From Octopus bimaculoides (taxonomy: Eukaryota), in assembly GCF_001194135.2 (NCBI RefSeq), contig NC_068986.1, forward strand, positions 31,500,875 through 31,564,874: DNA of 64,000 nt. The letters are read 5' to 3'. Of the stretch, positions 15,801-17,612 are shown piece by piece; position 1 is the stretch's first letter; each line of letters begins with the position of its first letter. The position numbers and the translations under genes were made by a program. The notes below the pieces were generated by a model. The model did not search any database, was not told the origin of the DNA, and worked only from the letters and a program-made list of their open reading frames with translations.

Positions 15801-15871
15801 CACTTACTGTAGTATATTTTGTAGTCTTTGGTGTTGGGGATTCCTTTCTCGGTGATTTTGTACGTAGACAT
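204..15871 (-). CDS. PPA1: Soluble inorganic pyrophosphatase (PPA1/PPA2, Nurf-38-like), 5' part. Coding exons 15871-15808 and 319-204; the gene continues off the left edge.
   Basis: Exon 1 encodes [21 protein letters not shown] and ends phase 1 at a GTAAGT donor (15807). Exon 2 (acceptor ttcttcAG at 321-320) continues in phase as [39 protein letters not shown] and ends at a GTAGGT donor. This matches the family I PPase N-terminal motif ISPFHDIP...MVVEvPRWtNaKME. Intron 1 is 320-15807 (15,488 nt). Confidence 0.92.
590..875 (-). mobile_element. SINE/RTE-tail repeat with a (TGA)n 3' end; representative of many copies (e.g. 9128-9325 -, 20480-20665 +, 30600-30935 +, 51710-52005 -, 55290-55410 -)
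   Basis: The motif ...ggttggcgttaggaagggcatccagctgtagaaact...ccaacccatgctagcatggaaagcggacgttaaa(tga)n recurs at least a dozen times in the window. Confidence 0.8.
1093..1330 (+). mobile_element. Helentron-associated (HINE/DINE-1-like) non-autonomous element fragment
   Basis: It starts ttattaccgccc with a short hairpin (ccct-tagcaa-aggg), then a GTTT/GTCC microsatellite and the atctcaaaaactgctggatggatt...gattagattttggg core typical of HINE-like repeats. Family assignment is by recognition only. Confidence 0.5.
3573..3758 (+). mobile_element. piggyBac-type MITE flanked by TTAA (related copies near 4694-4840, 8440-8640, 10247-10615, 28100-28226, 36803-37017, 55100-55290, 61160-61310)
   Basis: TTAA-cccttcagcattcag...tttaaatgcttacagg-TTAA. 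The family consensus ends are CCCTTTAGCATT / AATGCTAAAGGG. Confidence 0.7.
12052..12175. mobile_element. 124-bp MITE with perfect 41-bp TIRs and an 8-bp TSD (Merlin-like), inserted into a SINE
   Basis: The TIR is GGTAAATTTTCAGATTAACACCCGCACGATTTTCACTAGGG. The TSD AAAATAAG is at 12044-12051 and 12176-12183. The spacer contains TTAGGG/CCCTAA. Confidence 0.88.
12615..12813. mobile_element. Fold-back TIR element with internal telomere-like (CCCTAA)n/(TTAGGG)n tracts, copy 1
   Basis: GC-rich inverted arms ending ...ctttagtagtacc flank the spacer acacgtattcatttgcacacgc. The same family occurs at 18320-18506. Confidence 0.8.
14384..14614. mobile_element. 231-bp fold-back MITE (GG ends, about 82-bp TIRs, 8-bp TSD GAATGACC/GAGTGACC; Merlin-like)
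   Basis: The arms ggcataactacagggttttacccc...aaattttctat are nearly perfect inverted copies. The centre holds a 37-bp palindrome made of the element's own termini. Confidence 0.85.
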
Positions 15872-16393
15872 AGTTGCTGTTTGAAAAGAAAAGAGCCGTC
15901 GCTGCAGACCGCAAGAGAAGAGCGAAAATGAATGAAGCTGATGTAATAACTGCAGCAATGGACTTGGCGAAATTAGTCGGCGATTGCTAATCACACAAGC
16001 AGGACTCGATCTAGTGGTGATATTACCGGCAGCGAGTAGACGATCTGATGTGCACCACCAATGGCAAATATTACTACTGCCGCTATGTATTCTTCTTCTT
16101 ATATCAATACTGCTGCCGTCGACGTTACAAAAGCTTCTACCACCACTACTACCACCTCCGTTGCTTAGATTATTCTTATAACACGAAGCGCGACGCTTAT
16201 GAACTCCTACTCCCGCGCTTTCTTGTTCGACAGCTTTCAAAACCCGCCACCTCGCAAGCGTATTAGTATTAATTGATTGACATCGGTTAACAGTGGCAGA
16301 GGTGGGGGTCTTTGTGGAGTGTACACTGAGCCTTAATATACCAGGAAGAAGGTAAAGACGGCTGCTTGCAAAAGAAGGGTGGAAATGTTGCAT
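15872..16393 (-). CDS. Putative 174-aa in-frame N-terminal extension of PPA (long, possibly mitochondrial isoform)
   Basis: The frame is stop-free from 16426 through the MSTY start. The only upstream in-frame ATG is at 16393. Composition is 17 R + 4 K versus 5 D/E and Ser-rich, ending in ...[13 protein letters not shown]. Confidence 0.6.
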
Positions 16394-16531
16394 CGCTGTA
16401 ACGTACAAAACACACCGACCTCTACGTCACAAATACATACACACACACATACATACATATATAAACACACATATCATGTGTAATATATATATTTAATTGG
16501 CAGAAATTACAAATTTAAAAACATACAGAGC

Positions 16532-16562
<31 letters not shown>

Positions 16563-17099
16563 GCGTTGTCTCTTATATACTTATATCTATATATGTGTAT
16601 GTGCATAGACACACACGTGTATAAATATGCTTTAATTTACAAGTACATCCACAGTGAATATTATATCATAACAAGGTGACACCTGGTGTCTGAGTTCATT
16701 TACTAAGATGCAGTAACTAGTGTTTGATCACGGACACCTGCCCAGAATAACTTAATGGGTCGAAAGGTTATTTGGCATTAGCAAAAGTTGGGTTGGCCAG
16801 ACCAAATTATATATTTAATTTCCTTGGACAATCTATTGTTTTATTTAAATTTTTCTTTTGATGTTTTATCAATAAACGTGATCTGGCAGTATTGTAAATA
16901 AGGAAATTTTAAATAAAATTATGATTATAATCACGGGATTTTATTTATGTATATATATATTAATCTTTAAATATATCATGAAATGCTTTTCTTTTCTTTT
17001 TGTACTCGTAGATGTTTTTAAGTACTTACCAATTAAAAAGAAATGAGTTCTAAATTCCGGGAAATCAGTCGTATAAAATAAATTTAAAAAGACATTTTT

Positions 17100-17612
17100 T
17101 ACAGTTTACTTATTTCAGTCTTAGACTGCGGCCATGCTGGGGCACCGCCATGAAGGCTTGTAGTCGAACGAATCGACCCCAGTACTTTTTTTTCTTTTTT
17201 GAAGCCTGCTACTTATTCTATCGGTGTTTTTTTTGCCGAACCGTTAGCTTTGGGGACGTAAACACACCAGCACCGGTTGTCAAGCGATGGGGTGGAGGAT
17301 ACACTCACATATATGACAGAGTCTAAGGCATTTACCCCTCCCCCTCACCGCCAGGACAATTACCCCTGAGGACAACAAATGATTCAAAACTTCTTAATAT
17401 ACTGGAGAGGGGGTAATTAACCAAATGGGGTAATTGTGCTAGGGGATAGTTGTCGGGGGGGGGGGGAGTATTGTCCTATGGGGGTGTAATTGTCCTGATA
17501 CATGACAAGCTTCTTTCAGTTTCCGTCCACCAAATCCACTCACAGGGATTTGGTCGGCAGATGACACTTGCCCAAGGTGCCATTCAGTGGGACTGAACCT
17601 GGAACCATGTAG
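17100..17612 (-). mobile_element. tRNA-derived octopus-type (OK-like) SINE interrupted by a GC-rich insert at about 17319-17499
   Basis: SINE head (ggttcagtcccactg...gggcaagtgtc) and tail (ctccagcatggccgcagtc...tgactgaaa) in reverse orientation flank a ggacaattacccc-motif insert. Confidence 0.7.

Follow-up and report, generated by a model that had tools for sequence, protein, structure and literature searches.

The locus considered here lies on the minus strand of a 64,000-nucleotide stretch of the Octopus bimaculoides genome (hereafter the window) and comprises the 5' part of a gene coding for a family I soluble inorganic pyrophosphatase (PPase). The family assignment follows from the orthologue in O. 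vulgaris (P0123), in which PF00719 is the sole Pfam domain and is matched with 168 bits against a gathering cut-off of 23.5. Two exons of the gene fall in the window, the rest of it being located outside. The conserved core part of exon 1 (15808-15871), whose junction with exon 2 was placed from loose ends of RNA reads, codes for 21 residues plus 1 nt and begins with an internal ATG at 15871-15869 that has an A at -3. It is followed by GTAAGT (15802-15807), which the sequence, RNA loose ends and assembled contigs all identify as the true splice donor of a 15.5-kb intron 1. Exon 2 (204-319; 39 residues), recognized by tblastn, by its sequence and by RNA cover with loose ends matching exon 1, holds the conserved ISPFHDIP...EIPRWTN block. 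The exon 1/exon 2 junction is seen both ways, i.e., reads and contigs leaving 319 resume at the end of exon 1, and the reverse. Over these two exons the long form read from the window is 100% identical to XP_014770567.1 (O. bimaculoides, 462 aa, P0219), which is recorded as 'inorganic pyrophosphatase-like isoform X1' under LOC106869360. Thus, the N-terminal extension with which this work is concerned is already an annotated coding sequence in RefSeq.

Upstream of the internal ATG, with which the conserved MSTY start of the enzyme begins, the reading frame continues without interruption. An in-frame TGA at 16427-16429 closes it on the 5' side, making an ORF start further 5' impossible, and from there to the MSTY ATG at 15871 it stays open for about 186 codons, in agreement with the roughly 185 stop-free codons counted in an initial annotation that was made from the sequence alone. 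The sole in-frame ATG in this interval, which that annotation had also singled out, lies at 16391-16393 in the context cagcgATGc, with a G at -3, and would serve as the start of the long isoform. It delimits an N-terminal leader of 174 codons (15872-16393, MQHFHPSF...LFSFQTAT) that runs directly into the MSTY start and constitutes the coding 5' part of exon 1, as attested by the ORF, the identity with XP_014770567.1, the RNA cover and the open frame in four octopods. A stop-free frame of this length was obtained in 0 of 2000 dinucleotide-preserving shuffles, and the remaining two frames carry 7 and 17 stops. The composition and motifs earlier ascribed to it can be read off exactly: 21 Lys and Arg against 5 Asp and Glu, 28 Ser and 19 Leu, the sequence QRRLFSF close to its end (residues 164-170), a donor-like GTACGT at 16401-16406 a short distance above the upstream ATG, and, before the MSTY ATG, the acceptor-like polypyrimidine-AG tract ctcttttcttttcaaacAG at 15877-15895, which codes for LFSFQT. 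The described sequence features are therefore genuine and far beyond chance, the use of the two splice-like motifs being a separate matter. Overlooked at first was an out-of-frame ATG at 16283, the only one in the leader, which opens a mini-ORF of 4 codons (MSIN followed by a stop; 16269-16283). A Pfam search of the leader returned no domain, and an AlphaFold2 model of the 462-aa protein built on an 11-sequence alignment has a mean pLDDT of 35.6 even in the catalytic core and is thus uninformative on the leader. A Cys/His metal-binding motif was considered in the leader and dropped, the cysteines not being conserved in Argonauta.

The initial annotation had interpreted the interval from 16406 to 15877 as a 530-nt retainable 5' intron, the splicing of which would give a cytosolic and the retention of which a mitochondrial enzyme. 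The GTACGT and the polypyrimidine-AG do sit where such an intron would have its ends, but the RNA evidence speaks against their use. In three raw paired-end RNA-seq runs, from unstranded libraries of which ~6% of each run was read, the gene is covered without a gap from 15808 to ~16410, with depths of up to ~120-320 reads. A junction from 16407 to 15876 was sought in these runs and none was present among the joints listed, so that any such junction could at most be rare. Likewise, none of the three runs has a depth step at 15877 or, among those listed, a loose end at that position, and upstream of it the depth goes up rather than down. Very few reads extend beyond 16407 to act as a first exon. 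From eight older RNA runs an mRNA contig of 1.4-1.6 kb was assembled in which exon 2 is joined to an unbroken exon 1. On exon 1 these contigs extend from 15806 to 16387, 16420, 16423, 16426, 16444, 16460 and, in two of the runs, at least 16432, so that 8/8 are contiguous and unspliced across the stretch. A retained or alternatively spliced 5' intron thus appears neither among the joints listed for the three raw runs nor in the eight assemblies; it is thereby refuted down to a frequency of a few percent, the donor-like and acceptor-like motifs are unused in these data, and a splicing switch of this kind is scarcely credible. The interval is ordinary exonic sequence and not an intron, and most likely represents the translated 5' end of PPase exon 1. 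Immediately beyond it lie (TG)n and (TA)n microsatellites at 16426-16600, to which RNA reads of unrelated origin map in their hundreds and contig fragments in their thousands. They give rise to spurious 'joints' and mask the point at which the longest transcripts really begin; the read piles over them were rejected as cross-mapping.

The distribution of RNA along the exon is biphasic. In all three raw runs the depth is about zero at 16430, climbs between ~16400 and 16250, remains on a plateau over 16160-16260 and then rises steeply from 16145 to 16100. The plateau corresponds to 20-50% of the exon maximum, a fraction that varies between runs. Molecule ends accumulate at 16391, 16246 and 16241, and over the upstream ATG at 16393 the depth is only 2-9% of the exon peak. 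This profile suggests that the ATG at 16393 is missing from most mRNAs, which would start 3' of it and code for the short isoform. PacBio or Nanopore runs containing the locus were sought, and none was found. A candidate internal transcription-start zone may be placed at 16100-16180 on the minus strand, on the strength of the depth profile in the three runs and the sequence rather than of mapped start sites. At its 5' edge, ~30 nt upstream of the steep rise and within conserved Cys-Tyr-Lys/Asn codons, is a TATAAG (16180-16175), a site at which four octopods have TATAAG, TATAAT or TATAAC. Another conserved element, TAGAGGTCG, is situated at 16416-16424, ~25-30 nt upstream of the long-form ATG, and was recognized by alignment with the octopod genomic contig L001 (~64-72) and the Argonauta sequence L004 (~2962-2970). 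It is kept in three octopod genomes though the flank surrounding it is otherwise unalignable with Argonauta, and may be viewed as a candidate core-promoter element for the long mRNA. The leader itself is poor in ATGs: counting any frame, a single ATG occurs in that of the window where 6.4 are expected (P = 0.0045) and none in that of L001 where 6.1 are expected (P = 0.001), while the Argonauta leader has 4 against 7.3, which is not significant, with its last 275 nt being ATG-free. Still further upstream, ~700 nt from the gene, there is a GC-rich patch (17100-17600; GC 0.47-0.51, CpG observed/expected 0.52) with short open frames only; RNA cover upstream of the gene was examined up to 17000.

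Leaders homologous to that of the window, ~170 aa long, are found ahead of the same Met in O. sinensis, O. vulgaris, Argonauta hians and the octopod represented by L001, a Logan genomic contig whose leader has 86% nucleotide identity with that of the window. In two transcripts from more distant and probably decapodiform cephalopods the leader measures 116 and 138 aa, and the range for other cephalopods as a whole is 116-176 aa. The frame is open in four octopods and these two further cephalopods, the other frames holding 5-19 stops, and shuffling assigns to the open frame a P of at most 0.0005 in three octopod DNAs and of 0.0125 in the sequence L002. Between the window and L001 the leader has accumulated 5-6 indels, every one of them a multiple of three (3, 3, 9, 6 and 12 nt), whereas the indels of the intron next to it, which is likewise 86% identical, measure 1, 3, 4, 5, 6, 7, 14, 22 and 25 nt. 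Random placement of the 69 observed substitutions leaves the frame open in just 4.8% of the trials. Against the Argonauta DNA only parts of exon 1 can be aligned, the intron and the upstream flank being unalignable. The frame also appears to be preserved among the alleles of O. bimaculoides: two of the eight RNA assemblies carry a 12-nt in-frame insertion at 16031-16032 (plus strand ACGAGTAGAGGT), which replaces A121 of the minus-strand product by APLLV and turns RLLA-AGN into RLLAPLLVAGN, i.e., the PLLV state of O. vulgaris and O. sinensis. The leader also has two common SNPs, at 15982 and 16032, both of them nonsynonymous (R138C and A121V, respectively), with allele fractions that vary strongly between runs, from ~15% to 100%.

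The substitutions present a different picture from that of the open frame. The differences between the leaders of the window and L001 are distributed over the codon positions as 23/22/26, the nucleotide identity of the leader equals that of the intron (0.86), and the frame-specific similarity to Argonauta is flat, with frame 0 no more similar than frame +1. A dN/dS below 1, which had been suggested as a check, is nominally found, omega being 0.62 for the window versus L001, but off-frame controls give 0.58 and 0.66 alike, and the value is therefore unusable as evidence of protein-level selection. By part, omega in the same comparison is 0.45 for residues 56-174 versus 0.99 for the first 55 residues. 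With the codon-position, omega and Argonauta tests all flat, the open frame is the sole coding signal. Thus, the substitutions in the leader look neutral, and what has been kept is an open frame, a composition and some nucleotide blocks, but not the amino-acid sequence. Conservation of this kind fits a presequence or a disordered leader, and is weaker than ordinary coding conservation.

A wider comparison places the octopus leader within a common arrangement. Other molluscs have leaders of ~45-87 aa before the same internal Met, as in the PPases of Magallana gigas (A0A8W8LFG1, 342 aa), Haliotis rufescens (356 aa) and Liolophura sinensis (335 aa). An extension of at least 25 aa is present in 129 of 211 related proteins, and in 123 of these 129 a Met lies within 3 residues of the start of the core. 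Leaders of at least 100 aa are found in only 12 of the 211, 8 of the 12 being cephalopod. The octopus gene itself displays what would be expected of a source of dual isoforms, namely two in-frame starts (16393 and 15871) that are split by the leader, with the downstream Met conserved.

Several features of the leader recall mitochondrial presequences. The first acidic residue occurs at position 56 in the window leader, the first 55 residues being free of Asp and Glu in O. vulgaris too, and at position 58 in Argonauta. The net charge over the first 50 residues is +6, there are 11 Ser and Thr in the first 40, and a phi-x-x-phi-phi motif begins at residue 16, but the helical moment is only moderate at 0.46 (on a heuristic of our own and not a trained predictor). 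Six residues ahead of the internal Met is the tetrapeptide R166-L-F-S169 (15887-15898), which is kept as R-x-F-S in 4/4 octopods and occurs as R-L-F-S in the equivalent place in the oyster. As a motif match only, R166-L-F/S169 (the slash marking the cut) has its Arg at the -2/-3 position relative to the predicted cleavage, and it resembles the R-3 type processing site of the mitochondrial processing peptidase. The usual mitochondrial presequence is ~20-60 residues long, a range well exceeded by the 174 aa found here and the 116-176 aa of other cephalopods. In view of the composition and the conserved R-x-F-S motif, mitochondrial targeting is plausible, and the leader is most likely a very long mitochondrial leader.

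These observations can be accommodated by a single gene from which dispersed or alternative transcription starts, perhaps together with leaky scanning, yield two N-terminal isoforms, an interpretation that we regard as reasonably probable. A minority of the starts would be located upstream of 16393, in the region where the conserved TAGAGGTCG sits at 16424-16416, and mRNAs beginning just upstream of that ATG would be translated from it into the 462-aa protein. Its ~55 acid-free, net-positive residues would then direct mitochondrial import, the predicted destination of the long form being likely on present sequence criteria, after which part or all of the leader would be removed, with the putative cleavage at R-x-F/S, 6 residues before the core Met. 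Most mRNAs would start within the leader at about 16390-16100, with the main step placed by the depth profile at ~16145-16100. In these the MSTY AUG at 15871, with A at -3, would be the first usable one because they begin inside the leader, and a cytosolic enzyme of ~288 aa would result. Leaky scanning from the long mRNA, made possible by the near absence of ATGs from the leader, is a plausible second route by which more of the short form could arise. Counter to a reading with two sets of starts, the depth step could be partly technical, given the unstranded libraries and the ~6% of each run on which it is based. As regards the initial annotation, its observation is confirmed and its intron mechanism refuted, while its broader idea of one gene serving both cytosol and mitochondrion fares better. 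The outline of one gene and two forms is favoured by the ATG-poor leader and the conserved Met, although not by way of a splicing switch, and the alternative transcription start, which had been offered as a fallback, finds support in the biphasic depth, its positions being deduced and not mapped. The alternative-start, one-gene-two-forms idea can thus be considered plausible and partly supported.

Different accounts of the same data have to be weighed against this. There might be only one class of mRNA with a single transcription start, both proteins being made by leaky scanning past the upstream AUG. The scarcity of ATGs in the leader is the classic signature of such a process, and the 5' leader before 16393 is probably very short, the depth being zero by ~16430; a short leader ahead of an AUG favours its bypass. 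A comparable mechanism is, moreover, documented for many human dual-localised proteins, PPA2 included (PMC12718117). Yet a single transcription start predicts neither a plateau with a second steep rise, the relative height of which differs between runs (20-50%), nor a pile-up of molecule ends within the leader, and these count against leaky scanning as the only route, which we deem fairly improbable. More radically, the entire stretch could be a long 5' UTR whose frame is untranslated, with the 462-aa protein being a longest-ORF artefact. The neutral substitution pattern and the want of frame-specific amino-acid conservation would be in keeping with this, as would the small number of reads that extend to the upstream ATG and the fact that the RefSeq models are predictions. 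It is, however, difficult to reconcile with the absence of stops from this frame, and not from the others, in four octopods and two further cephalopods, with indels that are all in frame in the leader and not in the intron, with homologous leaders before the conserved Met being the rule in molluscs and other invertebrates, and with the inclusion of the ATG at 16393 in mRNA contigs. On these grounds a purely untranslated leader is highly unlikely.

A further alternative accepts the translation of the long form but not the function of the leader as a cleaved presequence, or not as that only: it might direct the enzyme elsewhere, e.g., to the nucleus, or remain attached as a disordered regulatory tail. 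A length of 174 aa is atypical of a presequence, and residues 56-174 are better conserved than the first 55, as the omega values given above indicate. In addition, this better conserved part contains the basic clusters HKRRAS and IRRRIH, which could point to a nuclear route, and the orthologous Nurf-38 of Drosophila is one of the subunits that make up the nuclear NURF complex. On the other hand, the N-terminus is presequence-like in composition in all octopods, R-x-F-S is kept just ahead of the core, shorter and typical leaders occupy the same place in other molluscs, and the leader is without a Pfam domain. Hence, a destination or role other than that of a mitochondrial leader is considered unlikely. 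Returning to the reading with alternative transcription starts, an extension of it can be entertained, tentatively and with considerable doubt, in which the cephalopod leader, having grown to 116-176 aa, came to play a triple role as coding sequence of the long isoform, internal core promoter (e.g., through the TATAAG at 16180-16175) and ATG-free 5' UTR of the short one. Such an overlap of roles would explain why the leader can be aligned between Octopus and Argonauta without its flanks, why the frame never closes and why codon periodicity is absent.

Whether octopods possess a second PPA gene, a point to which the initial annotation had drawn attention, bears on the one-gene interpretation. 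A protein search was conducted with the octopus core against a collection in which three Octopus species and Argonauta are represented by their annotated proteomes. Among the 120 best matches, with identities of at least 49%, the cephalopod clusters consist of the orthologues alone, all of them leader-bearing. The lack of a second octopod cluster among these annotated proteins argues against a recent PPA paralogue in octopods; a divergent second PPA gene, below ~50% identity, or an unannotated one may nevertheless exist. Vertebrates and yeast have separate loci for the two compartments, PPA1/PPA2 and IPP1/PPA2, respectively, in contrast to the one PPA cluster of octopods among the 120 best annotated-protein matches. 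The Hydra vulgaris protein P0121 (640 aa), a very high-scoring PPase match that is double the normal length, is possibly a tandem double pyrophosphatase.

Both a cytosolic and a mitochondrial PPase are stated to be needed in model eukaryotes (PMC13170353). The closest experimentally studied case to the octopus gene is the sPPase locus of Plasmodium falciparum, PF3D7_0316300, where two promoters specify PfsPPase1 and PfsPPase2, one a cytosolic form and the other a form with a leader of 51 aa that has been shown by experiment to enter the mitochondrion and the apicoplast (PMC13170353). There, too, the shorter mRNA begins inside the longer transcription unit, and translation of the long mRNA from its internal Met has also been considered (PMC13170353). 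The parallel lies in one family I PPase gene providing a leaderless cytosolic and a leader-bearing organellar form, the octopus pair being a predicted one. The two differ in their layout: in Plasmodium two separate upstream exons code for the 51-aa leader and a 1.4-kb intron acts as the internal promoter, whereas the octopus gene has its 174-aa leader continuous with the core within a single exon, so that the putative internal starts fall within the coding sequence. More generally, two in-frame AUGs bracketing a mitochondrial signal, and used through leaky scanning or the choice of transcription start, are known from hundreds of human genes, including PPA2 and TRNT1, and alternative transcription starts produce the dual-localised isoforms of yeast CCA1 (PMC12718117). 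The octopus gene shares with these the pair of in-frame AUGs on either side of a putative targeting peptide, but their leaders are typically tens of residues long, and vertebrates have a separate cytosolic PPA1. The nearest likeness in sequence is with other molluscs and invertebrates, the insect Nurf-38 isoforms among them, in which a basic, Ser/Leu-rich extension is likewise followed by the conserved core Met; the molluscan extensions are of ~45-87 aa, as opposed to ~170 aa in octopods and 116-138 aa in the two further cephalopods. A search of the literature on invertebrate PPase isoforms and Nurf-38 found nothing specific.

If the interpretation is true, octopods, and probably most invertebrates, make both of their PPases from one gene by the choice of the mRNA start, in contrast to vertebrates and yeast, which have two genes for the same task. 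This would be a useful data point for the evolution of organelle targeting, but an unsurprising one, because the Plasmodium sPPase and many dual-localised enzymes of humans are documented to follow the same logic, and because the long coding sequence is in RefSeq already. Indeed, the arrangement is the norm for invertebrate PPases, the octopus gene being unusual only by the length of its leader, which is three to four times the usual and which has evolved near-neutrally with its frame kept open throughout octopod history. The possible double duty of the cephalopod leader as promoter and UTR may be added as a further modest point. For annotation, it follows that the octopus gene should gain a second, leaderless protein isoform and that the splice-like motifs within this exon are to be disregarded. 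The existing models also differ at the other end of the protein. Isoform X2 of O. bimaculoides is distinguished from X1 (the pair P0219/P0220) by one missing Val near the C-terminus (SDDQW in place of SDVDQW), as a NAGNAG-type acceptor shift would produce, and one O. vulgaris PPase model (P0218) has a C-terminus that is 10 aa longer.
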